Part shown: piece after piece, positions 4,011 to 59,102 of the stretch
Numbering within the stretch: the stretch's first letter is position 1
How the letters are laid out: each line of letters opens with the position of its first letter
Origin: Macrostomum lignano
Taxonomy: Eukaryota
Assembly: GCA_002269645.1 (NCBI GenBank)
Contig: NIVC01000625.1
Location: forward strand, 1-64,000
DNA length: 64,000 bases
Direction: 5' to 3'
Notes under the pieces: model-generated
Told to the model about the DNA's origin: nothing
Database searches by the model: none
What the model saw: the letters and a program-made list of their open reading frames with translations, nothing else
Position numbers and translations under genes: made by a program

Positions 4011-5509
4011 ATGTCGAACGTCGGCAGCTTCGGCTGCGAGTACGCCAAGCGCGGCACGGCCGGCTGCAAGCAGTGCAAGCAGAAGATTGACAAGGACACC
4101 CTGCGCCTCTGCAAGGTGGCCGCCAACCCGTTCTCGTCCGAGGGCGGCGAGATGAAGATGTGGTACCACGCCGGCTGCCTGTTCTCCACGTTCGAGCGGG
4201 CCCGCGCCACCACGCGGGTTGTGGAGTCGCTGGACGATTTGGACGGCGCCGAATCGCTGCAGGACGCCGACAAGAAGCTGCTGCAGCGCCTCATCGACGA
4301 TCTCGCCGAGAAGCGGCGCAACAAAGCGGCCGGCGGCGCCAGGGCGTCACCGAAGAAGCTGGTGCAGACCACCCTGCCCGTCAGCCCCGCTGGCAAGGCC
4401 TCCGCCGGAGCCTCCGCTGCCGCCTCCTCTGCCGCCGCCTCTGCCGCCGCCTCGACCTTGCCAACTCGAGCGCCGCTGTCGATGGCCGGTCCAGGCGACT
4501 CGCCCGAAGACGCTGCCAAGGACAACGCGTTTCGCACCTTCCGCAAACTCGTGGCCGAAATTGCAGACCGGCCGGGCTATTCGGACAAGACCCGGGTGCT
4601 GGCCGAGTTTCTAGCCAAGTAAAATGGCCTGACTCTGGTGCTTCCCTCTGGCTGCTTCTTAGTCAACCCAGTGTCTCCCAGTGAGTCACTGCTGACCCAC
4701 CCAAGTGTCCCCAGTGAGTCACTGCTGACCCACCCCAGTGTCCCCCAGTGAGTCACTGCTGACCCACCCCAGTGTCCCCCAGTGAGTCACTGCTGACCCA
4801 CCCCAGTGTCCCCCAGTGAGTCACTGCTGACCCACCCCAGTGTCCCCCAGTGAGTCACTGCTGACCCACCCCAGTGTCCCCCGGTGAGTCACTGCTGACC
4901 CACCCCAGTGTCCTTCAGTGAGTCACTGCTGACCCACCCCAGTGTCCTTCAGTGAGTCACTGCTGACCCACCCCAGTGTCCTTCAGTGAGTCACTGCTGA
5001 CCCATCCCAGCTAAGCCATCAACTCTGCCGCGCCAAATTTTTTCGCAGAGGCTCCACGGGCGGCGGCTTCAAAGGCGACCTGAGCCTGCTAATTCGCCTG
5101 CTGCTGCCGGGCGTTGAACGCCGCGTCTACAACGTGAAGGATCGCCAGCTGCTGAAGATCTTCAGCGGCATCCTCGGCGCGCCCATTGACGCGATGCAGG
5201 TGGAGAGACCGGCTCCCGCGTTTTCTGGTGCAGCTGGCAATCCAAGCCGCTCGCGGTTGACTGAGTCGCCCGTCCTCCCTCAAATGTCTTTCAGGAACTG
5301 CTCAACTCCAATGGCGACATCGCCGAGACAGTCGGCATCGAGTTCGACAAGCGGGGCAGCGGCGCCGCCAAGAGCAGTCTGAGTATGCAGGAGGTGGACG
5401 CCTTCCTGGACCGGCTGGCCGGCCTTAGCCGCGAGGACGACCAGGGCGCCGCCTTCAAGCAGCTGGCCGCCAAGTGAGACAGATAGATAGTTAGACAGAC
5501 AGACAGACA

Positions 5510-5542
<33 letters not shown>

Positions 5543-5604
5543 ACAGACAGACAGACAGACAGACAGAAAGGCAGGCAGACAGACAGACAGACAGAAAGGC
5601 AGGC

Positions 5605-5682
<78 letters not shown>

Positions 5683-8277
5683 ACAGACAGACAGACAGAC
5701 AGAAAGGCAGGCAGACAGACAGACAGACAGAAAGGCAGGCAGACAGACAGACAGGCAGGCAGGCAGAAAGGCAGGCAGGCAGGCAGACAGACGCATAGCA
5801 GTCCCATCACTGTGTCACAGCAGCCAACTGCTCCCCTCCACCCAGGTGCACCGGCAACGACCTGCGCATGGTGCTGCGTCTGGTGCGCCACGACTTGCGC
5901 ATGAACGCCGGTTCCAAGCACATCCTGGACGCCATCGACCCCAACGCTTACGCGGCCTTCCAGGCCTCCAGGAACCTGCACGACGTGCTCCAGCGAGCCC
6001 TGGCCGCCAAGGCCAGCCCCGTGAAGCGAAACCTCAGCGTCCGGGCCGCTCTCATGACGCCCGTCCTGCCAATGCTGGCCGAGGCCTGCCGCTCCGTTGA
6101 ACACGTGAGATTTGATTTGAGTCACACTGGCAGCTGTGTGATGGCTGAGATCTGTGAGATGTGAGATTTGAGTCACACTGGCAGCTGTGTGATGGCTGAG
6201 ATCAGTGAGATCAGCTGAGATCGGCGCTCACCCCTCCCTCAGGCCATGCGCCGCTGCCCGAACGGGTTCTACGCGGAGATCAAGTACGATGGAGAGCGGG
6301 TGCAGGTGCACAAGCAGGGCCAGCAGTTCTCCTACTTCAGCCGCTCGCTCAAGCCTGTGCAGCCGCACAAGGTAAGTAGCCAGGTATTTGTCAAGTACTT
6401 GCGTGTCAGTCACTGCCAGCCCCTGCAAGCCGAACTGCTATCCCCATTCTCCAACTCGCAGGTGGCCCACCTGAAGGAGTTCATTCCGCGCGCCTTCCCC
6501 GGCGGCGACAATCTGATTGTGGACGCCGAGGTGCTGCTCATGGACACCAAGACCGACAAGCCGCTGCCGTTTGGCACCCTCGGCGTGCACAAAAAGGAGG
6601 CCTTTAAAGATGCCACCGTCTGTCTGTTTGTGTTCGACTGTCTGCAGTTTAACAATGACAATCTGATGCTGCGGCCTCTGAAGGAACGGAGAGAGGTGCG
6701 TTGGATACAAAGCTTTGCTTCTCTTCTACTAAGTACTCGCGTACGTAAGCTTTCGTGTGCTTAGGTACTCGCGTACGTAAGTTTTCCTGTACTCAAGTAC
6801 TTGCGTACGTAAGTTCTCGTGTGCGTAAGTACATGTACTCGCGTACATAAGTTTTTCTGTACTCAAGTACTTGCGTACGTAAGTTCTCGTGTGCGTAAGT
6901 ACATGTACTCGCGTACATAAGTTTTTCTGTACTCAAGTACTTGCGTACGTAAGTTATCGCGTACGTAAGTTCTCGTGTACTTAAGTACTTGCGTACGTAA
7001 GTTCTCATGTACTTAAGTACTCGCATACTAAAGCTCTTGAGTACTTTTACGATTAAATAGTATCTGTCGGATCACTTGCAACCAGGTTCTGGAGCGCAGC
7101 ATGCAGGAGGTGAAGCATCGAGTCCACCTGTCTGAGGCCGAGCTCATCCGCAGTCCGGCGCCTCTGGAACGCCTGCTGAAGCGCGTCTTCAACGAGGGTC
7201 TCGAAGGCCTGGTGCTGAAGTCGTTGGACGGCGTCTACGAGCCCGGCAAGCGGCACTGGCTGAAGATGAAGAAGGACTACCTGCACGACGGAGCCATGGC
7301 GGACTCCGCCGACCTGGTGGTGCTGGGCGGCTACTACGGCACCGGCAGCAAAGGCGGCCAGCTGTCCATCTTCCTCATGGGCTGCCACGACGGCGAGGGC
7401 ACCTGGCGAACCGTCTGCAAGTGTGCCAACGGCTTCGATGATGCCACGGTGGCCAAACTGCAGAAGTCCATCGACTGGGTCAAGTGAGCTGATGGTCTTT
7501 GTTGTGAATGCCAGCTGGTCACGTGATCAGTGATTCCAGACCCATACCGGGAGCTGCTACCTGGTCACGTGATCAATGATCCCAGTAATGGTCCGTGACG
7601 CGGCTTTGCCCCTCCCCCGCAGGTACGACCGCCGCTCGCCGCCCAGCTGGCTTCGCTGCAGCAGCGGCCTCCTGCCCGACTGCCTGGTGCGCGACCCGAA
7701 GGCCTCCCCGGTGTGGGAGATCACTGGCGCCGAGTTCTCGCACTCCTCGCAGCACACGACCGGCGGCGTTGGCATCCGGTTTCCCCGGGTCACAAAGGTC
7801 CGCGACGACAAGACCTGGCGGGAGGCCACCAACCTCCAGAGGCTGCAGAAACTCGCCGCCGAGTCCAAGCGCTTCACTGGCGACGCCGGCGGCGATGGCG
7901 GCGACGACGATGACGAGGACGACGGCGAAGCTGCGGCCGCCCCGCCGCCGAAGAAGGCGCCAGCCGGCAGGAAGCTGGCGAAGTCGGCGGAGGCCTCGTC
8001 GTCGTCGCCGCCGAAGCGGCAGCGGCTGCAGCTGCCCGACGCGCTGAAGTCGGCACGGATCTGCTTCGCCGCCGAGGTGCTGCCGGCCGAACGGCGCGAA
8101 CTCGAGCGCCTCGTCTTCGCCTACGATGGCGACGTGGTTGACGAAGCGGCTGACGCCACCCACCTTGTGCGGCCGGACGGCGCCGCGGCCGGCGACTCGG
8201 CGCCCGGGGTGGCCGTTGGCAGCGTCAGCTGGCTCAGGCGGTGCCTGGCCGCGCGGCGGCTCCTGCCGGTCACGTGA
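4011..8277 (+). CDS. LIG3: DNA ligase III (PARP-type zinc finger, DNA-binding, adenylation, OB and BRCT domains); exons 4011-4618, 5049-5199, 5295-5473, 5846-6104, 6243-6371, 6462-6695, 7086-7483, 7623-8277
   Basis: Motifs EYAKRGTAGCKQC...WYHAGC (zf-PARP), EIKYDGERVQVHK (active-site Lys), EGLEGLVLK, YEPGKRHWLKMKKDYL and VWEITGAEFS...IRFPRV, plus a C-terminal BRCT-like segment. All introns are GT-AG with consistent phases. Confidence 0.97.
4672..5010. repeat. 33-34-bp minisatellite in LIG3 intron 1 (GTGAGTCACTGCTGACCCACCCCAGTGTCCCCCA)
   Basis: About 10 direct copies visible. Confidence 0.93.
5476..5790. repeat. (GACA)n/(GGCA)n microsatellite in LIG3 intron 3
   Basis: Direct reading. It explains the spurious CLSV-repeat ORFs. 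Confidence 0.97.
6730..7040. repeat. Palindrome-rich tandem repeat (AGTACT/TACGTA units) in LIG3 intron 6
   Basis: Recurrent GTACTTGCGTACGTAAGTT units. Confidence 0.85.
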
Positions 8278-9790: not shown

Positions 9791-10228
9791 GTTTGCGAGT
9801 TTGCGACCGCAGATTCGAGCTGCGCCATCAGCGCAAGCTGCATTAGAGGCTGCACACAGGTGACAAGAAGAGACCTGCGAACTTTGCGGAATGAATACAG
9901 TTTTGCCTAGTCTTTCAAAATTAATTGCACTTGCAAAATGACATGTTTTGACTTGTACTTTTAATAGTGTGTGCTACAATAATTCATTCGGTGTTGCATC
10001 GTGAATATCGATTTCAAGGACCTTTAGAAGTTATTGTTGTATCATGGATTGTTGTATCATGGACGGTACAACGGTAACTTCCATATTCTGTGGTAACTTC
10101 TAGTGGTCCTTGATTAATCAATCAACTTATTTGTCGTCGGATTTAATATGCGGATACTAGCGAGGTCTATCTAATTTCTATGTCGATAAGCACTACTTTA
10201 ATTATATTCAAATTGAGCCACGTGCAGA

Positions 10229-12702
10229 TCACAGCCTGCGCTTGTGCACCACCAGGCTGTGGTCGCCGGGCGCGCGCACCACACCGTCGGGTCCCAGCAG
10301 GATTTCGTCCCGACGCAGCCGGCAGTCCTCGGTCGGCTCGAAGCGAAACTTCTGCAGCAGAGTGACGAAGAAGATGAACAGCTCCATGCGAGCCAGCGTC
10401 TCTCCCAGGCAGGCTCGCTTGCCGAGGCTGAAGGGAATGAGGTACTCGGAGGCCTTGTAGGTCCCGGTCTCGGGATCAATAAACCGATCCGGCTTGAACT
10501 CGTGCGGCTCAGGGAACAGCTCGGGGTCCATGTGGACTGAGTACAGGTTGGGCAGCACCAGACTGTCCGGTGAGATGGGCAGTCCGTCCAACTCCACCGC
10601 CTGCAGGTGAGACGATCGAGAATGGTTCGGGATGAGCGTTCACGGAGATTGTGCAGCATAAATACCAGCAACTCAGCTCGCCTCACCTCAGAGACTCGAT
10701 GCTCGACGCTCATCGGCACCAAATTAGCGATTCGCTGGGTCTCATCGAGGAATGCCTGCACTTTGTGCAGACCGCGCTTGTCCTTCATGCTGACCTCGCG
10801 CAAGCCGATGCTGGCGGCGATCTCGGCGTGACAGGCCTCCTGGTACTCCGGGTGAAAGCTGCAGTACAGCAGGGCCCAGCGCAGTGTTGTGGCGGTGGTC
10901 TCGCTGCCGGCCAGGTACAGGTCCAGCACAGTTCGCACCAGCTGCAGGTTGTCAAAACTGCCGACTCCCCCGGAAGCCTGTCGCAGCCGCTGCTCCTGCA
11001 GATAGGCCTCAACAAAGCAGCTGGGCTCGCTGGACTCATCGTAGTTGCGGTCAATAGCCTGGATTTTCTCCCGGCAGTGGTCCATGATCCACTTCTCGCT
11101 CTGTAGGTACCGCCCGGTGCTCGGCGCCAGAGCGGTTAGCCAGGCCGGCAGCTGGGGAAAGAAAAACATGAGCTCGGTGTCCAGGCCGGCTTGCGTCAGG
11201 GCCTTCGTGTGATGAAGGAAATTGTCCAGCTTGGGGTCCTCATATCCGCTGCGTTGGGCGAATACGAGACTGCCAATCACGTTCACTATGGCCTTCGTGA
11301 TGTGCACTGCAAACCACGGTGACTGATGTAATTTATGGCGAGGAAAATCCTGTAATTTGTGACATTATAAAAGTACTAAAGGCTCTTTCACACCAGCATC
11401 AAATCAAACCAATTTTTTAATGACCCACGGCCTCTACATATCGTTACTTTGTGCTGCATCAGCTGTGATTTGATAGCTGAAAATCCCTTTCTCAGAATAA
11501 GTGGCACGACCCTTTCTTCGAAAGCAGTTGGGCTTGTATAATTACCATTAATGTTAATCCATGTTAAGCTCAATAATAGAGTCCATTGAGTCCAGTCACC
11601 TTTGCTATGCAATCAATACTCGTTGTTATGCAATCAATACTCGTTGCTATGCAATCAATACTCGTTGCTATGCAATCAATACTCGTTGCTATGCAATCAA
11701 TACTCGTTGCTATGCAATCAATACTCGTTGCTATGCAATCAATACTCGTTGCTATGCAATCAATACTCGTTGCTATGCAATCAATACTCGTTGCTATGCA
11801 ATCAATACTCGTTGCTATGCAATCAATACTCGTTGCTATGCAATCAATACTCGTTGCTATGCAATCAATACTCGTTGCTATGCAATCAATACTCGTTGCT
11901 ATGCAATCAATACTCGTTGCTATGCAATCAATACTCGTTGCTATGCAATCAATACTCGTTGCTATGCAATCAATACTCGTTGCTATGCGATCAATACTCT
12001 GCTATGCAATCAATACTCTGCTATGCAATCAATACTCTGCTATGCAATCAATACTCTGCTATGCAATCAATACTCTGCTATGCAATCAATACTCGTTGCT
12101 ATGCAATCAATATACTCGTTGCTATGCAATGGGGCCCAAAGATTAAAACAAATTCGAAAATACAATTCCAGAAGTTTAGCAAAATCCTCACCATTCAAAT
12201 CCGTCTCCTGTCCGCTCAGGTCGCTCAGCTTTGCAGCGAGTTCTTGCGCCTCCGTCTGGATCTGCTGCTCCGAGAGGCTCCTGCCGAGGCCGAAGTCCCG
12301 CAGCACTCGCAGGGTGAAGCGGCGGTGCTCCAGCCACAGTGCACCTTCCGATAGCAAGAGGCCGCGGCCCTGGGCCATGACCTGGTAGAGAGGCTGGTTC
12401 GGCCGCTGCGAGAACTGGTCGGCCCGGCCTACCAGCGCCGCCTTGATCTGCTGGTAGCCGGAGATCAAGATGAACTCCTGCGTGCCGAGTACAACGGAGA
12501 TGACGTCACCGTAGGCTGCTCGCATTTCGTTCAAGAATCGATACCAACGGAAGCCCGGTTCGACAAAAGCTCTGTACAGCATGTAGGGCAGGCTGCCCAG
12601 GACAGGCAGGCCAATCGGACCGCGGCGCCGCAACCGCTGGAACAGGTGGCGGCCCAGCAGACCGGCCAGGAGGGCCGCGGCTAACGGTTTAACGATCTGC
12701 AT
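10229..12702 (-). CDS. Cytochrome P450, CYP2 clan; exons 12702-12192, 11306-10687, 10600-10229 (500 aa)
   Basis: N-terminal anchor followed by GPIGLPVLG, I-helix LYLAGSETTATT, ExxR (ETQR), KPDRF and heme motif PFSLGKRACLG. Spliced length is 1503 nt, in frame. Confidence 0.95.
11603..12128. repeat. 21-bp minisatellite (GTTGCTATGCAATCAATACTC) in CYP intron 1
   Basis: About 25 copies. It explains the AMQSILV-type ORFs. Confidence 0.96.
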
Positions 12703-12844
12703 GCGGAATAGTGAAGAGTCTGCAGGCAAGTTTGCTTAGAGAATTTGCTTCCAAGTTTCTGTAAAGAACTAAATACTGCTTTAGAGTCAACACTCGCGTG
12801 CATACCAGACATGAAGTGCAGTTTTTATTTGCACACTGCTACCT

Positions 12845-14874: not shown

Positions 14875-16129
14875 CGAGCGGTGCACTAAAAAAGTCCTGA
14901 GCCTCGGTGTGAAAGAGAGAATTGGGGCAAATACAGTCAGCTTTTTTCTACATAGTCTCCCTTGACCAAGAAGCACTTGTGACATCTTGATCGCAGTGCT
15001 TCGATGCCGCTCTGAAAGAACTGCTTTGAGCACCCCTCGAACCAGGAGGTCGCAGCATCCTTCAGTGCCTCATCAGTGTCAAATCGCTGCCCACGGAGCG
15101 CCCGCTTGAGATGCGGGAACAGGTGAAAGTCGCTGGGGGCAAGGTCTGGTGAATAGGCTGGGTGCAGCAGCTCTCGGAACCCTGCAACACTGACAGCCGC
15201 CTTTGCCAGTCCACTGGTGTGGGCAGGTGCGTTGTCGTGCAGCAGCACCACACCACGGCTCAGCATTCCCCGCCGATTCTCCTTGATTGCCTCACAACGG
15301 CAGTAGCACAACTTCCAGCAGCAGTGGGCCTTTGGCATCCCAAAAGATGGTGAGCATTATCTTGCCTGCACTGCATCCAGTCCGTGCCTTCAGTGGTGCT
15401 GGTGCACCAACTGGCAGCCACTGATTCGACTCCTCCTTTGACTCGGGATCATGGTGGTGGATCCATGTCTCATCACCGGTCACGCAGCAGGACAGAAAGC
15501 CGGCATGATCTGGATCGTAAGTTTGCAGGACAAGCTTCGCATACTGCAACCGCGCGGACTTCTGCTCGCTTGTCAAGATTCGCGGGATCCACCGGGCCGA
15601 GACCTTCGACAGATGAAGATGCTGGTGCAGGATCTCGATGACCTGTGGGTCAGAGAGCCCGCTTTCCGTGTCTGCCACAGGTTCCCTGACCTTTACTCGC
15701 CGGTCGCCATCAACCAGGGCCGCGCTGGAGGCGCTGGATGTTGTCAGCAGTGACAGCAGTCCGGCGGCGTCCGCATCGAGGGTCATCTTCGAGAGAGTCG
15801 CGGCCACGCTTGAACTTGTCTGCCCATACGCTTGACAGTGGCGTATATGAGGGGGCAGCCCCAGCATACACGGCGCCATGCGACTTTGGATTTCAACAGT
15901 TTTTGAGCCCTCCAGGGTCAGGAATTTGATCACTGCCCTGTACTCAATTTTCAGTTCTTGAGAATTTGCCAATAGGTAGCTGAAAATATTAAGGTGCTAT
16001 GGAACTTATGTAATGCCTAGAGAGCTGAAAATTTTGTCAAAGACTATTAACATATTATTGTGTTAGAGCATCGAGTTTCAGCGCTTTGTGACATGGAATC
16101 TTGGTCGAACTTTTTTAGTGCCCAGCTCG
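14875..16129 (-). mobile_element. Full-length (1255 bp) but frameshifted mariner (DD34D) DNA transposon; transposase at about 15972-14937
   Basis: Imperfect TIRs CGAGCGGTGCACTAAAAAAGT / ACTTTTTTAGTGCCCAGCTCG flanked by TA (14873-74 and 16130-31). Motifs YRAVIKFL, VTGDETW, KIMLTIFWD, LLHDNAPAH and YSPDLAPSDF. At least three frameshifts. Confidence 0.93.
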
Positions 16130-23523: not shown

Positions 23524-26041
<2,518 letters not shown>

Positions 26042-29036: not shown

Positions 29037-30842
<1,806 letters not shown>

Positions 30843-31074: not shown

Positions 31075-34340
<3,266 letters not shown>

Positions 34341-35015: not shown

Positions 35016-35455
35016 TCAGTAGCACTGGCCGTACCGGTTGGAGGCATTGATGGGCAGGCAGTAGCCCGAGCAGCACTGCCTGAAGCTCACGCACAGGTGG
35101 CCTTTGGCCAGACAGGCCGCCTCCGCTGCTGAACTCTGCCCGGACATCACTGCGGGGGCGGGTTGGGAATGGCGGTTACTGCTGCATCTGAGCCCTCACT
35201 GACAGTCCCTGCACTCCATCTGAGCCCTCACTGACAGTCCCTGCACTGCATCTGAGCCCTCACTGACAGTCCCTGCACTGCATCTGAGCCCTCACTGACA
35301 GTCCCTGCACTGCATCTGAGCCCTCACTGACAGTCCCTGCTACCTCCAGAGCTGCCCCTAGACCAGGCCATCTCAGTCAGCATAGGAAGTGACTCACCGT
35401 AGAGCAGAGTAACTATGAGCAGCAAAAGCAAAGTCTGCAACCGAGGTTGAGCCAT
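35016..35455 (-). CDS. Secreted cystine-knot (ICK/conotoxin-like) peptide A; exons 35455-35398 and 35149-35016
   Basis: MAQPRLQTLLLLLIVTLLY/VMSGQSSAAEAACLAKGHLCVSFRQCCSGYCLPINASNRYGQCY*. Signal-peptide exon, phase-1 GT-AG intron, spacing C-x6-C-x5-CC-x3-C-x11-C, and a minus-strand AATAAA near 34950. Confidence 0.82.
35180..35345. repeat. 32-bp repeat (about five copies) in the peptide A intron
   Basis: Unit CTGCATCTGAGCCCTCACTGACAGTCCCTGCA. Confidence 0.9.
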
Positions 35456-35665
35456 GGGTGAAGCTGTGCCGATCCAAGTATTCGGTCCGGTGTTGGGGCA
35501 ATTGTTACTGAAGTAGCAAGGGAGGATGCATTGAGCTCAATATGTCCGCAGACCTCATGCAAATGTCTATGGCCCAGACCTGAATGTATTCCTGTGTAAT
35601 ATGTAGTTCAAGTTTGAATATCAGCTTCGAGTTTGGTCAAGTGTCTGCTCAGAACAGCTGCCAAA

Positions 35666-35922
35666 ATGGTTTCCCATTTGAGCACAGTTATTATTTTGCT
35701 CGCAATGATTCTGTTTTTAGGTGAGTCAGTTAATTTGTGCGTTGTGAATTTTCTGCATACGTGACGGTTGTTGGAGCTTCCCAGTGCTCTTCTCCATTAG
35801 GCTACGACGCGGTAAACAACTGCTGGCTGGTCGGTGAGCACTGCTCGGATGGCAACCAGTGCTGCTCACACCAGTGCTACTCAAGCAACGACAGGTTCGG
35901 TCCTCTCGGACTCTGCCTCTGA
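35666..35922 (+). CDS. Secreted cystine-knot peptide B; exons 35666-35720 and 35801-35922 (alternative acceptor at 35777)
   Basis: MVSHLSTVIILLAMILFL/GYDAVNNCWLVGEHCSDGNQCCSHQCYSSNDRFGPLGLCL*. Phase-1 intron, spacing C-x6-C-x5-CC-x3-C-x12-C, AATAAA at about 35974 and 36000. Confidence 0.82.
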
Positions 35923-36785: not shown

Positions 36786-37659
36786 CAGGGGGTCTTCAGT
36801 TAAAGCCGGAATTCATGCAGTTAGAAAGAAATTCAGACCGCAGCACTGCATGAGCCCTCGAGCTATCTTGAGTAGATAAAGGTACTTAATTGAGGCTTCT
36901 TTAGTACGTGAAGTCACTCCCTGATGTTCAAAAATGCCAACATTAGTTCTGGTCTTGCATTGTCACCTGCACGGCACTTGTGGGAGGCAATTTCAAGTGA
37001 ATTGAGGCAGCTCAGCACCCATAGCCTGGGGGTCCGTATTCTAGTTATAGCTATTCACCTTTGACAACTGAGCAATTAAGGAGCTCGGGGCTGACTCAAC
37101 TGCAGCCCGGGAATTGGTGGCTGCAGAGCCTCGGGGCATCTGAAAATTCTAGTGAGGAAAGCTCTGAGTTTGATGGCTTTCATATCAAGAAGTACTTTAT
37201 TTGGCGAGGGGTTTGGGAGCTTGGGAAATCATCAGATTTCTACCCTAAAATTGAGTAGCGCACACTTCGAAACTGCCAGGTGTCCGGGTTTAATCTCGGG
37301 TGTCCCTGAGCGGTTGTACGATCGCTACATCTGGCATTGAGCTGATGGTTCATGTGGAAAATGATATCCATAAAATATGCATTAGCTGTGGCCCACTTTT
37401 ATGAGTTCAGTGCCAAGTAAATTGAAAACTGGGGGGGGGGGCGGCAGAGCTCGGAGCTTGCAGTTTCCTGTTGACCTCAGCTTGTAAATTCGGCTTCATT
37501 TTACAACCTGGCCGAGTCTGAGCTGCCAGGTATGAAAATCAAATTAGCACCGATCAGCGTACAAGTAGAGACTGCAGAGCGCAACCAGAACTGCTCCAGG
37601 AGTGTTCGCTCTGTGGCGTCCTTTGCCGTCAGTTGGAATCTGTCCAAACTACCCCGAGG

Positions 37660-39885
37660 AGTCCCTGCTGTTCTCTTGACCGATCCGGGGGAATCCCTGC
37701 TGTTCTCTATACCAATCTGGGGAAATCCCTGCTGTTCTCTTTACCAATCTGGGGGAATCCCTGCTGTTCTCTTGACTGATCCGGGGGAATCCCTGCTGAT
37801 TCTCTTGACTGATCCGGGGGAATCCCTGCTGTTCTCTATACCAATCTGGGGAAATCCCTGCTGTTCTCTTGACCGATCCGGGGGAATCCCTGCTGTTCTC
37901 TATACCAATCTGGGGAAATCCCTGCTGTTCTCTTTACCAATCTGGGGGAATCCCTGCTGTTCTCTTGACTGATCCGGGGGAATCCCTGCTGATTCTCTTG
38001 ACTGATCCGGGGGAATCCCTGCTGTTCTCTATACCAATCTGGGGAAATCCCTGCTGTTCTCTTGACTGATCCGGGGGAATCCCTGCTGATTCTCTTGACT
38101 GATCCGGGGGAATCCCTGCTGTTCTCTATACCAATCTGGGGAAATCCCTGCTGTTCTCTTTACCAATCTGGGGGAATCCCTGCTGTTCTCTTGACTGATC
38201 CGGGGGAATCCCTGTTGTTCTCTTGACTGATTCGGGGAATCCCTGCTGTTCTCTTGACTGATCCGGGGGAATCCCTGCTGGTTCTCTTGACTGATCCAGG
38301 GGAATCCCTGCTGTTCTCTTGACCGATCCGGGGGAATCCCTGCTGGTTCTCTTGACCGATCCAAGGGAATCCCTGCTGTTCTCTTGACCGATCCGGGGGA
38401 ATCCCTGCTGTTCTCTATACCAATCTGGGGAAATCCCTGCTGTTCTCTTTACCAATCTGGGGGAATCCCTGCTGTTCTCTTGACTGATCCGGGGGAATCC
38501 CCGTTGTTCTCTTGACTGATTCGGGGAATCCCTGCTGTTCTCTTGACTGATCCGGGGGAATCCCTGCTGGTTCTCTTGACTGATCCGGGGGAATCCCTGC
38601 TGTTCTCTTGACTGATCCGGGGGAATCCCTGCTGGTTCTCTTGACTGATCCAGGGGAATCCCTGCTGTTCTCTTGACCGATCCGGGAGAATCTCTGCTGT
38701 TCTCTTTACCAATCTGGAGGAAACCCTGCTGTTCTCTTGACTGATCCGGGGGAATCCTTGCTGTTCTCTTTACCAATCTGGGGGAATCCCTGCTGGTTCT
38801 CTTGACTGATCCGGGGGAATCCCTGCTGTTCTCTTTACCAATCTGGGGGAATCCCTGCTGGTTCTCTTGACCGATTCGGGGTAATCCCTGCTGGTTCTTT
38901 TGACCGATCCAGGGGAATCCCTGTTGTTCTCTTGACTGATCCGGGGGAATCCCTGCTGTTCTCTTGACTGATCCGGGGGAATCCCTGCTGTTCTCTTTAC
39001 CAATCTGGGGGAATCCCTGCTGGTTCTCTTGACCGATTCGGGGTAATCCCTGCTGGTTCTTTTGACCGATCCAGGGGAATCCCTGTTGTTCTCTTGACTG
39101 ATCCGGGGGAATCCCTGCTGTTCTCTTGACTGATCCGGGGGAATCCCTGCTGTTCTCTTGACTAATCCGGGGGAATCCCTGTTGTTCTCTTGACTGATTC
39201 GGGGAATCCCTGCTGTTCTCTTGACTGATCCGGGGGAATCCCTGCTGGTTCTCTTGACTGATCCAGGGGAATCCCTGCTGTTCTCTTGACCGATCCGGGG
39301 GAATCCCTGCTGTTCTCTTGACTGATCCGGGGGAATCCCTGCTGTTCTCTTGACTGATCCGGGGGAATCCCTGCTGGTTCTCTTGACTGATCCAGGGGAA
39401 TCCCTGCTGTTCTCTTGACCGATCCGGGAGAATCTCTGCTGTTCTCTTTACCAATCTGGAGGAAACCCTGCTGTTCTCTTGACTGATCCGGGGGAATCCT
39501 TGCTGTTCTCTTTACCAATCTGGGGGAATCCCTGCTGGTTCTCTTGACTGATCCGGGGGAATCCCTGCTGTTCTCTTTACCAATCTGGGGGAATCCCTGC
39601 TGGTTCTCTTGACCGATTCGGGGTAATCCCTGCTGGTTCTTTTGACCGATCCAGGGGAATCCCTGTTGTTCTCTTGACTGATCCGGGGGAATCCCTGCTG
39701 TTCTCTTGACTGATCCGGGGGAATCCCTGCTGTTCTCTTGACCGATCCAGGGGAATCCCTGTTGTTCTCTTGACTGATCCGGGGGAATCCCTGCTGTTCT
39801 CTTGACTGATCCGGGGGAATCCCTGCTGTTCTCTTGACTAATCCGGGGGAATCCCTGCTGTTCTCTTGACTAATCCGGGGGAATT
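37660..39885. repeat. ~32-bp minisatellite array (GGGGGAATCCCTGCTGTTCTCTTGACTGATCC and variants)
   Basis: About 2.2 kb with higher-order blocks. The 442-aa minus-strand ORF is an artefact of this array. Confidence 0.95.
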
Positions 39886-46339: not shown

Positions 46340-49612
<3,273 letters not shown>

Positions 49613-52741: not shown

Positions 52742-55700
52742 ATGAGCAGCTCGCGGCACGTGCTCTACACCAAAGACGACACCGAAGAGCTGGGTGAGGA
52801 CAACGGCATCCCCCTGTCCAACCTGCAGTCCGACGACTGTCCGCTTACTGACGACTCCGATGTTGAGGAAGTCACCGTGACAAGGGAGCCGAATCAGAGT
52901 CTGGTGAGTGAGATGCAGGGCGCGGATAGAGGTGGAGATGCAGGGTGGGGAAGGAGGTGGAGATGCAGGGTGGTGGAGGTGGAGATGCAGGGCGGGGAAG
53001 GAGGTGGAGATGCAGGGCCTGGAAGGAGGTGGAGATGCAGGGCGGGGAAGGAGGTGGAGATACAGGGCGGGGAAGGAGGTGGAGATGCAGGGCGGGGAAG
53101 GAGGTGGAGATGCAGGGTGGGGAAGGAGGTGGAGATGCAGGGCGGGGAAGGAGGTGGAGATGCAGGGCGGGGAAGGAGGTGGAGATGCAGGGCGGGGAAG
53201 GAGGTGGAGATGCAGGGCGGGGAAGGAGGTGGAGATGCAGGGCGGGGAAGAAGGTGGAGATGCAGGGTGGGGAAGGAGGTGGAGATGCAGGGCGGGGAAG
53301 GAGGTGGAGATGCAGGGCGGGGAAGGAGGTGGAGATGCAGGGCGGGGAAGGAGGTGGAGATGCAGGGTGGTGGAGGTGGAGATGCAGGGCGGGGAAGGAG
53401 GTGGAGATGCAGGGTGGGGAAGGAGGTGGAGATGCAGGGTGGGGAAGGAGGTGGAGATGCAGGGCGGGGAAGGAGGTGGAGATGCAGGGCGGGGAAGGAG
53501 GTGGAGATGCAGGGCGGGGAAGGAGGTGGAGATGCAGGGTGGGGAAGGAGGTGGAGATGCAGGGCGGGGAAGGAGGTGGAGATGCAGGGCCTGGAAGGAG
53601 GTGGAGATGCAGGGCGGGGAAGGAGGTGGAGATACAGGGCGGGGAAGGAGGTGGAGATGCAGGGCGGGGAAGGAGGTGGAGATGCAGGGCGGGGAAGGAG
53701 GTGGAGATACAGGGTGGGGAAGGAGGTGGAGATGCAGGGCGGGGAAGGAGGTGGAGATGCAGGGCGGGGAAGGAGGTGGAGATGCAGGGCGGGGAAGAAG
53801 GTGGAGATGCAGGGCGGGGAAGAAGGTGGAGATGCAGGGCGGGGAAGAAGTGAAGATGCAGGCTAGGGAGGGAACTGGAGATGCAGGGAGGTAGAGATGT
53901 AGGGTGGGGAGGAGGGAGCAGCGCGGTGTGGCCGAATTCACCCGCCTCAGCTGTCCCGCGCCACCCCGCAGGGCTTCTCCGTGATCACCGAGGCCGGGGA
54001 GCTGAAGGTCGGCCGTGTCATCGTCGACAGTCCCTGCCACGATCAGCTAAGAGTGGGCGATCGCTTGCTGGCTGTGAATGGCCTCCAGGCTGCGGGGCTG
54101 AGTCCGGGGGAGCTCTCCTCTCGTCTGGTGAGTCACCAAGTTGGTGTAGAATTTTACGGTTTGAGAATGGGGATCAATGTACATTTCTTATCAGGATGAA
54201 TGTACATTGCTTATCGGGATGAATGTACATTGCTAATCAGGATGAATGTACATTGCTTATCAGGATGAATGTACATTGCTTATCGGGGATGAATGTACAT
54301 TGCTTATCGGGGATAAATGTAAATTTCTTATTGGGATAATGAATGTTCTTTGCTTATCGGGATGAATGTACTTTGCTTATTGAGACGAATGTGTACTGTG
54401 CCGCCCCCCCCCCCAAGAATCAGGAACAGGCACCTGAGCTGACTTTCAAAGTACGCCGGGCTTCCGTGAACGGAAACGCAGCCCCAACCATCGAAGTTGA
54501 GCACCTGAGGGCTCCCTACGATTATGACGCCAGCAAGGACTGCCAGTGCCCGTGCAAGAGTGTCGGTCTGGCCTTCAAGCAAGGTGACATCATCCGAGTT
54601 CTGAACAAGAGCGATCGCAACTGGTGGCAGGGCCGCGTCCTGCAAGCGGATGGGTCCTTGGGAACAGCTGGCATTTTCCCGGCGCCCAAGTTCCAGAGAA
54701 AGCACTTGTGAGTGAGCCGGTGTTCCAGAATCAGCTGCAGATAGATCACTCACCTACCCTCAGCTGCAGATAGATCACTCACCTACTCTCAGCAGCAGAT
54801 AGATCACTCACTCACCTACTCTCAGCTGCAGATAGATCACTCACCTACCCTCAGCTGCAGATAGATTACTCACCTACCTACCCTCAGCTGCAGATAGATC
54901 ACTCACCTACCCTCAGCTGCAGATAGATCACTCACTCACCTACTCTCAGCTGCAGATAGATCACTCACCTACCCTCAGCTGCAGATAGATCACTCACCTA
55001 CCCTCAGCTGCAGATAGATCACTCACCTACCCTCAGCTGCAGATAGATCACTCACCTACCCTCAGCTGCAGATAGATCACTCACCTACCTGCCCTCAGCT
55101 GCAGATAGATCACTCACCTACCTGCCCTCAGCTGCAGATAGATCACTCACCTACTCTCAGCTGCAGATAGATCACTCACTCACCTACTCTCAGCTGCAGA
55201 TAGATCACTCACCTACCCTCAGCTGCAGATAGATCACTCACCTACCTGCCCTCAGCTGCAGATAGATCACTCACCTACCCTCAGCTGCAGATAGATCTCT
55301 CACCTACCCTCAGCTGCAGATAGATCACTCACCTACCTGCCCTCAGCTGCAGATAGATCACTCACCTACCCTCAGCTGCAGATAGATCACTCACCTACCC
55401 TCAGCTGCAGATAGATCTCTCACCTACCCTCAGCTGCAGATAGATCACTCACCTACCTGCCCTCAGCTGCAGATAGATCACTCACCTACCCTCAGCTGCA
55501 GATAGATCACTCACCTACCTACCCTCAGCTGCAGATAGATCACTCACCTGCCCTCAGCTGCAGATAGATCACTCACCTACCTACCCTCAGCTGCAGATAG
55601 ATCACTCACCTGCCCTCAGCTGCAGATAGATCACTCACCTACCCTCAGCTGCAGATAGATCTCTCTCCCGCCCACAGAAAATCAGACATGGCCGTGGATT

Positions 55701-56915
55701 TCGAGTCGGTGACCTTGCAAGACTCCGGGCACCGCCCGAATCTCCTCATCCTGGTGGGCCCTCCGCGCGGCGGTCGGCATGAGCTGCAGGCCGCCCTCTG
55801 TCAGAAGCGCCCGGACCTCTTCGCTCTCCCGGAGTGCCACACAAGCCGCCTGCGCAGACTAGAGGAGGCTGAGGCCGCTGGCTTCTGCTTCATCAGCAAA
55901 AAGGAGTTCAAAAGGTTTCGTAAGGCTGGCGAGTTTGTGGAGCAATGGAAAGCCGAGGACGGCAGCTGCGGCATTCACATCGAGAGCGTCAAGAGGGTGA
56001 TGGACAGCGGCCGAGTCTGCGTGCTGGCGCTGCGCCCCGACAGCCTGGAGGCCCTGCGGAGCCGCCGGCCGCCTCTCATGCCCTTCACAGTCTTCGTTCT
56101 GCCGCCTCAGCAGCCACAGCAGCTGCGGGACATCCTCGGGCAGCTGGAAGATAACGAGGAACTAACCACTGTGAGCACCATCACTCACTCACTCTGAGCA
56201 CCATCACTCACTCACTGTGAGCACCATCACTCACTGTGAGCACCATCACTCACTGTGAGCACCATCACTCACTGTGAGCACCATCACTCACTCACTCTGA
56301 GCACCATCACTCACTGAGCACCATCACTCACTCACTGTGAGCACCATCACTCACTCACTGAGCACCATCACTTACTCACTGTGAGCACCATCACTCACTC
56401 ACTGTGAGCACCATCACTCACTGTGAGCACCATCACTCACTCACTGAGCCCCATCACTCACTCAGTGAGCACCATCACTCACTCACTGAGCACCATCACT
56501 CACTCACTGTGAGCACCATCACTCACTCACTGAGCACCATCACTCACTCACTGTGAGCACCATCACTCACTGTGAGCACCATCACTCACTCACTGTGAGC
56601 ACCATCACTCACTCACTGAGCCCCATCACTCACTCAGTGAGCACCATCACTCACTCACTGAGCACCATCACTCACTCACCCTCCAACACTCCCCAGCTCT
56701 CATAATGACTCAATGGCCCTCCTCTACCGCAGGACCATTCGTTCGTCAGTCGCCTGTCCTCCGTGATCAAGTTCGACATGGGGCACCTGTGCGACCTGTT
56801 CCTGCAGCTGACAGACCTTAGTTCCGCTGTCCAGCAGCTGGTGGAGCAGCTGGAAAAGCTGAGCACTCAGCGTCAGTGGGTGCCCAGTGCCTGGCTGGAG
56901 GACTCAACCCGATGA
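52742..56915 (+). CDS. p55-subfamily MAGUK 2 (PDZ-SH3-GUK, no L27 seen); exons 52742-52903, 53972-54127, 54418-54707, 55678-56170, 56733-56915
   Basis: PDZ EPNQSL/GFSV...LRVGDRLLAVNG; SH3 LRAPYDYD...CPCKSVGLAFKQGDII...NWWQG; GUK LILVGPPRGGRHEL...QWVPSAW. Splice phases are consistent. Confidence 0.87.
52910..53890. repeat. 25-bp purine-rich repeat (GGAGGTGGAGATGCAGGGCGGGGAA) in MAGUK-2 intron 1
   Basis: About 39 copies. The long G/R-rich ORFs here are artefacts. Confidence 0.95.
54165..54375. repeat. 23-bp repeat (GGATGAATGTACATTGCTTATCG) in MAGUK-2 intron 2
   Basis: About 9 copies. Confidence 0.9.
54730..55662. repeat. ~29-bp repeat (CAGCTGCAGATAGATCACTCACCTACCCT) in MAGUK-2 intron 3
   Basis: About 30 copies. 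Confidence 0.94.
56165..56680. repeat. 19-23-bp repeat (CACTGTGAGCACCATCACTCACT) beginning at the MAGUK-2 intron 4 donor
   Basis: About 23 copies. The first copy spans the exon/intron boundary. Confidence 0.92.
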
Positions 56916-57282
56916 AGAAAGAAGCTGCTGCCACACCCTAGCCGAGACTCGCTGTGTACAAAATCGTCTTTTGTGGCTGTCAATTATTTATTTGTGATTC
57001 GAGAAATGCTAATTTGCACTGCCTGCCTCTACTCAAGCTCACTATATGCAACAGTTTTGCGTAATTCAATAATCCGAATTTTTCATCCACTGCTGCGTTT
57101 CTTTGCAAATCAAAAAGTCAAAGAAATTAATTAGTTTTATTTCAGTAATTATGAGAACTTCACACCGGGCCTTTTCATGTTAATTTGGTTAATTGGTTAG
57201 TGAATTACTGCTTACTGAGCAACTATTTGTTCGTATAATTTTCCTCATTCTATTTGCCCACTGGGCGGGGGTTTAAACAACC

Positions 57283-57700
57283 ACCCCATTCTCTCCTCCC
57301 CAGTTCATTCAACTGATTGGCCGGGAGCTTGGTCCACGACCCCATTCTCTCCCCTCTGTTCTTTCCCTGATTGGCCGGGAGCTTGGTCCATCAACCCATT
57401 CTCTCTCCTCTGTTCTTTCCCTGATTGGCCGGGAGCTTGGTCCATCACCCCGTTCTCTCTCCTCTGTTCTTTCACTGATTGGTCGGGAGCTTGGTCCACC
57501 ACCCCATTCTCTCTCCTCTGCTCTTTCCCTGATTGGCCGGGAGCTTGGTCCACCACCCCATTCTCTCCCCTCTGTTCTTTCCCTGATTGGCCGGGAGCTT
57601 GGTCCACCACCCCATTCTCTCTCCTCTGTTCTTTCACTGCATGATTGGCCGGGAGCTTGGTCCACCACCCCATTCTCTCTCCTATGTCCTTTCACTGATT
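57283..57700. repeat. 54-bp repeat containing TGATTGG (CCAAT box on the minus strand)
   Basis: About 7 copies, period 54. Confidence 0.92.
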
Positions 57701-57815
57701 GGCCGCGGGGTTGGTCCAGCAGCCCATGTTTTCGTGGTAACTCTGAATTTTTTACAACAGGATCAAATGTAGGATCAAGATTTAAGTCAAACTACCGAAG
57801 CGAAAACAGCTGCAG

Positions 57816-58462
57816 TTAGTATCTTGGCCGGACGCACACCTTGAACGGGGTGCCGTAGCCGGACCGGCCCTCCCACTCGCAGAAGGAGCTGCAGCACTGC
57901 CACCACTGGATGCAGGACTCGCCGAGGCCGTGGCATTGGTTCAGGTGGCTTCTGCACCCGTGAGCTGCGCTGTACAGCAGAGCTGTGGGTTTTTAAAATG
58001 CGCCGATATTTCTAACACCTACTATGAGTAGCATACAACAACAACAACAACAGAGTACGCTGCCAGATCACAAAAGCAGCGTCAGATGGCGCGCTTCAAA
58101 GCTTGGGCGCGAACAAAAGCCGCACCGCCGACAGAGTCCGGGGCGCCGGCGTCAGCCAGCAGACAGTCGACGTAGCGCCGAGTCCTCGCCTGTCCCCGCC
58201 GGTAGGGTGCCTGCAACGTAAGTAGCAGCGCCTCCTGCACCGGCTCCGGGCAGTAGGCCTCGGCGCGGATGGCGTGGCCTGCCAGCTGGAGTCGCCGACG
58301 GCGCAGCAGATCGCTAGGACGGGCCAGGCCGGCGCGATGATAGAGCATGCGAGTAGCGAGTAGAGTAGCATGCGACATTTAATAGTGTCTCAGCGGTGCT
58401 AAAAATGGAGCACGTGACTCACCTACTAGGAGATAGAGCATCAGAAGCGGGAGGCTGTGCAT
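57816..58462 (-). CDS. Secreted cystine-knot peptide C; exons 58462-58423 and 57982-57816 (alternative acceptor at 57964)
   Basis: MHSLPLLMLYLLV/ALLYSAAHGCRSHLNQCHGLGESCIQWWQCCSSFCEWEGRSGYGTPFKVCVRPRY*. Phase-1 intron and spacing C-x6-C-x5-CC-x3-C-x14-C. Confidence 0.82.
58035..58362 (-). mobile_element. 5'-truncated RTE-like non-LTR retrotransposon 3' end inside the peptide C intron
   Basis: Minus-strand RRRRLQLAGHAIR...RRGQARTRRYVD resembles the C-terminus of RTE-type ORFs. It has a (TTG)n tail and a candidate 9-bp TSD GAGTAGCAT at 58026-58034 and 58363-58371. Confidence 0.75.
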
Positions 58463-58671
58463 TATTGCCAGCAGATGAAGAAGTTCCTGGCACACTAAAA
58501 GCAGTGGCGGCTGCCGATGAATTAACTCACGTATGAGCTTGAGGTTTTGTTAGACTTTATTTAGGCTTTGTACTTGAGGCTTTTGGCCGTAGACAGGGAC
58601 CTCGGTGACCGGAGTGGGGCGAATTCTAAAGTTCTAAAAATAGCATCTGTAATTAAAAGCGCAGCAGTTAG

Positions 58672-59102
58672 ACTCCTCATGCCAGCTCATTATGGACTCC
58701 TCATGCCAGCTCATTATAGACTCCTCATGCCAGCTCATTATAGACTCCTCATGCCAGCTCATTATAGACTCCTCATGCCAGCTCATTATAGACTCCTCAT
58801 GCCAGCTCATTATGGACTGCTCATGCCAGCTCATTATGGACTGCTCATGCCAGCTCATTACAGACTCCTCATGCCAGCTCATTATAGACTCCTCATGCCA
58901 GCTCATTATAGACTCCTCATGCCAGCTCATTATAGACTCCTCATGCCAGCTCATTATAGACTCCTCATGCCAGCTCATTATAGACTCCTCATGCCAGCTC
59001 ATTATAGACTCCTCATGCCAGCTCATTATAGACTCCTCATGCCAGCTCATTATAGACTCCTCATGCCAGCTCATTATAGACTCCTCATACCAGCTCATTA
59101 TT
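58672..59102. repeat. 24-bp repeat (TCATTATAGACTCCTCATGCCAGC)
   Basis: About 18 copies. Confidence 0.95.

Follow-up and report, generated by a model that had tools for sequence, protein, structure and literature searches.

A third knottin-like peptide gene in a local cluster of the flatworm Macrostomum lignano, with a probably mis-framed public model

The window, a 64,000-nt stretch of contig NIVC01000625.1 in assembly GCA_002269645.1 of Macrostomum lignano, carries three small genes for Cys-rich peptides, here called A, B and C. Gene C lies on the minus strand and, when spliced from 58423 to 57982 (58423/57982 below, a slash marking a splice junction or cleavage site), it is read from the DNA as a 207-nt coding sequence of 68 codons, giving a predicted 68-aa precursor, MHSLPLLMLYLLVALLYSAAHGCRSHLNQCHGLGESCIQWWQCCSSFCEWEGRSGYGTPFKVCVRPRY, followed by a stop. 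Two additional near-identical copies of the window region, loci L001 and L002, were used alongside it. The features of the three genes are listed here in window positions.

58555 to 58563, minus strand: TATA-like element TAAATAAAG, read from the DNA, with a putative promoter role
58463 to 58517, minus strand: 5' UTR of gene C, its start taken from the 5' end of BOX15_Mlig007128g1 (L001 10001, aligned to 58517)
58462 to 58423, minus strand: coding part of gene C exon 1, MHSLPLLMLYLLV plus the first base of an Ala codon, for the N-terminal half of the signal peptide
57983 to 58422, minus strand: phase-1 intron of gene C, 440 nt long; counted from the same donor, that of the second copy, L001, has 103 nt
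58035 to 58362, minus strand: 328-bp insertion in the gene C intron, absent from L001
57816 to 57982, minus strand: exon 2 of gene C, 167 nt, for ALLYSAAHG (the remainder of the signal peptide), the 46-aa mature peptide CRSHLNQCHGLGESCIQWWQCCSSFCEWEGRSGYGTPFKVCVRPRY and the stop
35666 to 35922, plus strand: gene A, MVSHLSTVIILLAMILFL/GYDAVNNCWLVGEHCSDGNQCCSHQCYSSNDRFGPLGLCL and stop (exon 1 35666-35720, intron 35721-35800, exon 2 35801-35922)
35016 to 35455, minus strand: gene B, MAQPRLQTLLLLLIVTLLY/VMSGQSSAAEAACLAKGHLCVSFRQCCSGYCLPINASNRYGQCY and stop (exon 1 35455-35398, intron 35397-35150, exon 2 35149-35016)

Exon 1 of gene C opens with the ATG at 58462, encodes a hydrophobic stretch of 13 residues and reaches its coding end at 58423, before GTGAGTCACG. 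The donor at 58423/58422 reads TAG/GTGAGT and is a strong phase-1 site, and a second, weaker tandem donor, CTA/GTAGGT, is located at 58427/58426. The acceptor at 57982 reads cacag/CT (AG at 57984-57983, in the context aaaaacccacag) and an alternative in-frame acceptor, gcgcag/CT, is also present at 57964. Translation of exon 2 gives ALLYSAAHGCRSHLNQCHGLGESCIQWWQCCSSFCEWEGRSGYGTPFKVCVRPRY and ends at the TAA at 57818-57816. The encoded peptide is laid out as ...AAHG-CRSHLNQ-C-x6-C-x5-CC-x3-C-x14-C-VRPRY, with a Trp-rich loop 2 and seven Cys residues, the last six of which are spaced 6-5-0-3-14, while the seventh, N-terminal Cys falls at the predicted signal-peptide cleavage site. Inspected by eye, the signal region shows an n-region MHS, an h-region of 17 residues and AHG at positions -3 to -1. 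The TATA-like element TAAATAAAG is located 38-46 nt 5' of the annotated transcript start (L001 10001, window 58517), and no AATAAA was found in the 400 nt downstream of the gene C stop, in which respect genes A and B differ. An earlier sequence-only reading of this region had proposed the signal exon, the phase-1 intron, exon 2 and the acceptors at 57982 and 57964, together with a seventh Cys near the cleavage site; all of these were read from the DNA at the positions it gave. It had also pointed out that the gene is missing from a mechanical ORF list, which is correct and is due to the exon-2 frame having no start codon of its own, as no ATG, GTG or TTG precedes the domain.

Genes A, B and C share a common plan made of a short hydrophobic ATG exon, a phase-1 donor G/GTGAGTCA and a single knot exon. 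The GenBank junctions of A and B are exactly the phase-1 GTGAGT junctions derived from the DNA. Specifically, the gene A junction agrees with that of BOX15_Mlig014797g1 (...MILFL/GYDAVNNC), NIVC01000625.1 bearing an annotated 73-aa product at 35621-35922, and the 63-aa product of gene B is identical to PAA79588.1 (BOX15_Mlig017616g4) and to UniRef A0A1I8IQJ6, named 'UPF0506 domain-containing protein', with GenBank copies that read ...TLLY/V(M/L)(S/A)GQSS..., i.e. the DNA-derived junction. The Cys spacing is 6-5-0-3-12 in A, 6-5-0-3-11 in B and 6-5-0-3-14 in C, A and B having exactly six Cys. Across the mature peptides, which show 33-38% overall identity, the invariant columns are C, G (residue 4 of loop 1), C, QCCS, C, G (in the last loop) and C; this agrees with the 6-5-0-3 spacing and conserved Gly that the sequence-only reading had described as common to the three.

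The motif C-x6-C-x5-CC-x3-C-x8-16-C was matched at three sites when the window was translated in six frames (in gene C, at 35.8 kb on the plus strand and at 35.0 kb on the minus strand) and at none in 300 first-order Markov simulations, and the pattern in gene C is not a product of chance. A family HMM scored gene C at 77 bits. The proposal of a third member with the same two-exon, phase-1 plan is borne out, and gene C is the third member of a knottin-like cluster, each gene of which already has a GenBank entry as a hypothetical protein. Only 211 bp separate the ATGs of A and B, a head-to-head layout pointing to a common bidirectional promoter, and C lies 22 kb away. A tandem repeat of five 32-bp units (35182-35340) is held in the gene B intron. 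The family had been called dispersed; what we found is three genes clustered locally within 23 kb, a small group that every genomic copy has, with no further member detected by the family HMM in the 105 kb scanned (window, L001 and L002). A search of 5.8 billion proteins with the three-sequence profile retrieved A, B and C only.

Homology searching with the gene C precursor found a single protein, PAA69910.1 ('hypothetical protein BOX15_Mlig007128g1, partial [Macrostomum lignano]'), encoded by the second copy on contig NIVC01001281.1 of the same assembly GCA_002269645.1 (locus L001). The model behind it comes from an RNA-seq-based annotation, and the gene C locus is therefore a real transcribed gene that is spliced at the predicted acceptor. 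PAA69910.1 reads SAAATAFSVPGTSSSAGNNAQPPASDALSP-T-LLYSAAHGC... in an 85-aa, 5'-partial frame with neither a start codon nor a signal peptide. The gene range and CDS length together put the end of its exon 1 at L001 10091, CTA/GTAGGTGAGT, so that its donor precedes the GTGAGT donor by 4 nt; its acceptor is the predicted 57982. The exons and splice sites of gene C are the same in the window and in L001, and the model and the junctions under comparison are as follows.

L001 10001-10365 (365 nt), equivalent to window 58517-57816, minus strand: the PAA69910.1 model
58427/57982, minus strand: junction of the GenBank model, CTATCTCCTA/CTCTGCTGTACAG (also CTATCTCCTA/CTCTGCTG)
58423/57982, minus strand: junction of the GTGAGT donor with acceptor 57982, CTATCTCCTAGTAG/CTCTGCTGTACAG (also CTCCTAGTAG/CTCTGCTG)
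58423/57964, minus strand: junction with the alternative acceptor 57964, CTCCTAGTAG/CTCACGGGTGC

With the donor at 58427, the frame opened by the ATG at 58462 ends after 25 residues (MHSLPLLMLYLLLCCTAQLTGAEAT and stop) and the knot exon is out of frame. The expectation of a spliced transcript was thus borne out in part: the locus is transcribed and the acceptor is confirmed for the second copy, but the sole transcript-based model uses the other donor and breaks the frame.

The ATG at 58462 is the first AUG in the annotated transcript. The alternative frame used in GenBank lacks any Met, and in the window copy a TGA closes it four codons 5' of the equivalent of the annotated start. Measured against the metazoan donor consensus, TAG/GTGAGT matches at 8 of 9 positions and CTA/GTAGGT at 6 of 9. 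The hydrophobic core continues unbroken across the junction, up to AHG, in the GTGAGT frame only (LPLLMLYLLV/ALLYSAA). We favour the GTGAGT junction 58423/57982 as the functional one because it is homologous to the junctions of A and B, better fits the consensus, provides a continuous core ending in AHG and starts from the first AUG, the other frame being non-initiable; fusion of the two signal-peptide halves thus appears to be the best-supported reading of the sequence. An assembly indel reconciling the GenBank junction with the ATG was also considered and rejected, as any such single-base change destroys the hydrophobic signal sequence and, moreover, the window and L001 agree base for base in exon 1.

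The M. lignano annotation was built with STAR, StringTie, TACO (isoform-frac 0.75), BLAT-mapped de novo transcripts and TransDecoder, with repeat-overlapping transcripts discarded, and its isoform filter retained only isoforms expressed at 75% or more of the level of the major one. A transcript that uses the upstream donor at 58427 therefore probably exists and, since the pipeline kept only isoforms at or above that level, its junction may even be the dominant one. The GTRAGT consensus, with GT at +1 and +5, is known to give rise to tandem donors 4 nt apart and, through them, to minor alternative isoforms. ORF calling by longest open frame (TransDecoder) would prefer the 85-aa frame without a start over the complete 68-aa ORF and may have biased the deposited model. 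Overall, the public model of gene C is probably mis-framed, and PAA69910.1 represents either a tandem-donor isoform or an annotation artefact. The 68-aa precursor had no exact match in a collection of 15 billion proteins, and hence no public model with the GTGAGT junction was found there, but the same collection also lacks the RNA-seq-derived A and B, so that this absence says little. The identifiers Mlig007128, Mlig017616 and Mlig014797 were sought in the text and supplements of a set of M. lignano papers for expression or proteomic data, and were not found there.

The genome of M. lignano is recently duplicated and neopolyploid (PMC5730564; PMC10733133), which allowed the copies of each gene to be compared. 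For gene C, whose third genomic copy would lie on NIVC01000108.1 beyond L002, the comparison was made between the window and L001. The two copies differ at 1 of 207 coding sites, the synonymous position 57944, against 11 of 329 aligned sites (3.3%), plus indels, in the intron, UTRs and promoter (Fisher p = 0.034). The mature peptides of A, B and C are identical between genomic copies, and the amino-acid differences seen in A and B are confined to the signal and pro regions (VMSGQSSAAEAA versus VLAGQSSVAEAA in gene B, VIILLAM versus VIIVLAM in gene A). Toxin families classically show the opposite, a 'conserved signal, hypervariable toxin' pattern. The proposal that the family is fast-evolving is accordingly unsupported on the recent timescale, as the mature peptides are unchanged and the changes fall in the signal and pro regions.

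The 328-bp insertion in the window copy of the gene C intron lies between the two copies of a 9-bp target-site duplication, ATGCTACTC (58371-58363 and 58034-58026), has a (TTG)n stretch as its tail and contains a 98-aa ORF (RRRRLQLAGHAIR...). This ORF gave no Pfam match, and no second copy of the insertion was found in the sequence scanned. Duplication, tail and ORF together point to a probable non-LTR retroelement truncated at its 5' end, and the absence of the insertion from L001 indicates that it is recent and polymorphic between genomic copies. The gene C copy on NIVC01000625.1 appears to lack annotation, which the repeat filter and the intron insertion may together explain. Minisatellites flank the gene on both sides, with eight copies of a 54-mer at 57280-57727 and 18 copies of a 24-mer at 58669-59101.

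Searches against Pfam placed none of the three genes in a known family. Neither the precursor nor the mature peptide of gene C matched UPF0506 (PF11703) at E<=10, and gene A gave no match to it either, while gene B scored 17.1 bits (E 0.007), below the 23.2-bit gathering cut-off and over profile positions 33-54 of 59 only. Among the Pfam venom knottin families (Omega-toxin PF06357, Toxin_29, Toxin_18 and Conotoxin), gene C hit only Conotoxin, at E = 1.2 and 10.6 bits and thus below the cut-off, and gene B reached 14-17 bits where the cut-offs are 24-25. Neither gene C nor gene A is recognised by any Pfam knottin model. The sub-threshold scores of gene B were roughly equal for the UPF0506, PhTx, O-conotoxin, trypsin-inhibitor and antifungal-peptide models. 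The UniRef label on gene B is thus a weak pointer to flatworm knottin-fold proteins, linking it to the knottin class and not to UPF0506 specifically, and from its sequence gene C is properly classified as a candidate knottin-class peptide of a local Macrostomum family. An exhaustive family-profile search of 1.84 billion representatives gave 36 matches. Most were rejected as homologues, being multi-repeat Cys-rich proteins from unrelated sources that have only C..G..C....CCS..C in common with the family, a likeness at the level of class or composition. Some of the matches consist of 2-13 tandem C..G..C....CCSG.C knottin-like modules, for example a 95-aa protein whose two repeats are separated by KR, and lipoprotein-like proteins of 400 aa that hold 9-10 repeats.

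Several known systems resemble this cluster in part. UPF0506 proteins are likewise small, secreted, Cys-rich flatworm proteins with a C-C-CC-C-C framework, from which gene C differs by its seventh Cys, its Trp-rich loop 2 and the lack of a Pfam match. They are secreted by Schistocephalus solidus and have a knottin fold and undefined function (PMC8400842); one member marks parenchyma in S. mansoni, and a UPF0506 protein binds IGFBP1 in a screen. The CRP-I peptides of Mytilus are short, secreted products of a clustered multigene family with a C-C-CC-C-C array and a predicted knottin fold (PMC10138031). They differ in having the Cys array in exon 4, in some cases several arrays, and large presence/absence variation, whereas A, B and C are three genes with two exons and one array each. 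These lophotrochozoan defence-peptide candidates remain of unclear function after assays (PMC10138031). The framework is also common to cone-snail O-superfamily conotoxins, PhTx (Toxin_29) and plant knottins (SOTI-III, bidentatide), but their precursors are organised differently, A, B and C having no long propeptide. The weak profile matches of gene B to these models (E 0.005-0.1) all fall under the family cut-offs and are class-level. Gene C further recalls omega-hexatoxin-Hv1a (omega-atracotoxin-Hv1, PDB 1axh), which has the same C-x6-C-x5-CC-x3-C-x13-C layout with the loop-1 Gly at position 4 and CCS. This toxin belongs to another phylum, gene C has no match to the Pfam Omega-toxin family and the Foldseek E-value between the two is 1.6; the likeness of their scaffolds is likely to be due to convergence.

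In the AlphaFold2 model of mature C, which was built on the three-sequence alignment and has a pLDDT of 74 (57 for the N-terminal 10 residues), strands 26-32 and 38-43 carry Cys V and VI and are placed as expected for an ICK hairpin. A Foldseek search of the PDB with this model returned knottin toxins as seven of the eight top matches, all at E>0.3 and with TM scores of 0.45-0.60; such matches are non-significant, as expected for a peptide of only about 45 residues. They comprised sea-anemone Tst2, the funnel-web toxins U21-hexatoxin-Hi1a and Hc3a, delta-paluIT2, Ms11a-3, Aps III and omega-atracotoxin-Hv1, the last of these giving the highest TM score (0.60/0.73, rmsd 1.5 Å over 34 columns, E = 1.6). 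The model of gene B reached a pLDDT of 91, and Foldseek matched it to the spinach trypsin inhibitor SOTI-III (probability 0.99), to maurocalcin (TM 0.74) and to other knottins. Against PDB chains, the A/B/C sequence profile matched knottins only, the best being bidentatide (E 0.006). The six-Cys knottin framework C-C-CC-C-C, with loops in the knottin range, is present in gene C; in a knottin the bonds run I-IV, II-V and III-VI, the third threading the ring. An odd number of Cys is unusual in knottins.

From these results, we consider it probable that gene C is a two-exon gene for a secreted peptide of the knottin (inhibitor-cystine-knot) type. Its transcription would start about 55 nt upstream of the ATG at 58462, exon 1 would supply the first 13 residues of the signal peptide and the strong donor TAG/GTGAGT (58423) would be joined in phase 1 to the acceptor at 57982. 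Exon 2 would provide the remainder of the signal peptide, ALLYSAAHG, and the 46-residue mature peptide, cleavage being most likely at AHG/C, where the residues at -3 and -1 are small. Bonds I-IV, II-V and III-VI among the last six Cys would make up the knot, together with a beta-hairpin at the C-terminal end, and the N-terminal seventh Cys would stay unpaired. The product may be a stable extracellular binder of some target, such as an ion channel, a protease or a membrane, and serve in defence, prey handling or signalling. Use of the donor at 58423, secretion, knot connectivity and any activity are steps that we infer, as are a toxin or defence role for gene C and any role of its seventh Cys.

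Three other explanations were weighed against this one. Gene C could be a transcribed but non-productive paralogue, the mRNA of which is mainly spliced 58427/57982 and yields the 25-residue product with the knot exon left untranslated, either as a decaying duplicate of the A/B type or as a gene kept off through unproductive splicing. Just this junction appears in the GenBank model for the second copy, which was built with the 0.75 isoform filter, and the lack of a canonical poly(A) signal, the odd Cys count, the retroelement-like insertion in the intron of the window copy and the standing of C as the most divergent member, unrecognised by Pfam, would all fit this reading. Yet the frame, the signal exon, the GTGAGT donor and all Cys are intact and identical in both copies, and the single coding difference is synonymous where the flanks differ by 3.3%; in addition, tandem donors are a known source of minor isoforms, and a length bias of TransDecoder may account for the deposited frame. 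We hold a non-productive gene C to be rather unlikely. Improbable, to our minds, is a secreted Cys-rich peptide that is not a true knot and resembles the ICK type in framework only, with another connectivity (an intrachain bond of the N-terminal Cys that leaves a different Cys free, for example) or as a rearranged disulfide-linked dimer. Its seven Cys, the modest pLDDT of the C model, lowest over the N-terminal 10 residues, and Foldseek E-values all above 0.3 would fit such a peptide, and in vitro the same C-C-CC-C-C framework took non-knottin pairings in synthetic CRP-I peptides of mussels (PMC10138031). Gene C nevertheless has its six-Cys framework, loop lengths and G/QCCS/G invariants in common with the six-Cys A and B, of which B is modelled confidently as a knottin, and the strands with Cys V and VI of its own model sit where an ICK hairpin would have them.

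That the locus is a chance open frame and no gene at all might be argued from an exon-2 frame without its own start codon in a region between minisatellites. Three motif matches against none in 300 simulations, a plan common to two annotated paralogues and the RNA-seq annotation of the second copy refute this in practice, and we give it next to no credence. A bolder version of the secreted knottin would make gene C a seven-Cys knottin that dimerises through its spare Cys, one, with A and B, of a family of secreted omega-hexatoxin-like effectors (toxin or antimicrobial defence) of the Macrostomum lineage that lie outside existing family models, are gated by a 4-nt tandem-donor switch and are the first functional knottins in a free-living flatworm. 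We regard this combination as a long shot, and the dimer as pure speculation.

If the corrected model of gene C is right, PAA69910.1 is mis-framed and the NIVC01000625.1 copy appears unannotated, and correcting both would add a secreted knottin to the peptide repertoire of this flatworm. As M. lignano is genetically tractable by transgenesis and RNAi, it offers a place to test what the knottin-fold proteins of flatworms do, among them the UPF0506 proteins that parasitic species secrete. The advance is an incremental one, an annotation refinement that brings one more member to a very widespread peptide scaffold, and not a discovery.

The remainder of the window holds the following host genes.

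4011 to 8277, plus strand: DNA ligase III-like gene (zf-PARP and ligase domain)
10198 to 12729, minus strand: cytochrome P450
19841 to 20371, plus strand: pirin
25601 to 26041, plus strand: GNAT acetyltransferase
29037 to 29621, plus strand: D-Tyr-tRNA deacylase
32063 to 32944, plus strand: short-chain dehydrogenase
48406 to 49035 and 55688 to 56197, plus strand: two guanylate-kinase (MAGUK) exons, tandem paralogues by their appearance

The neighbours are consistent across copies, with the short-chain dehydrogenase, D-Tyr-tRNA deacylase and GNAT genes near A and B and guanylate-kinase (MAGUK) genes downstream of C. A homology search with the guanylate-kinase ORF at 55688-56194 (plus strand) found nothing at E<=1e-20 among 183 candidates, an odd result given that L001 has an annotated 419-aa MAGUK adjoining gene C; perhaps most of the ORF is intron read-through, or else the word index missed the protein. 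The minisatellite load of the window is extreme, with 58 Tandem Repeats Finder rows of score >=200 and periods mostly of 18-60 bp in both inter- and intragenic positions, and many of these repeats make long spurious multi-frame ORFs (for example 23763-25624, 37658-39884 and 52910-53888). Lastly, a mariner-type transposase (Pfam Transposase_1, E 2e-9) is encoded by two adjacent ORFs, apparently split by a frameshift, at 14937-15972 on the minus strand, which is probably a decayed mariner-like element.
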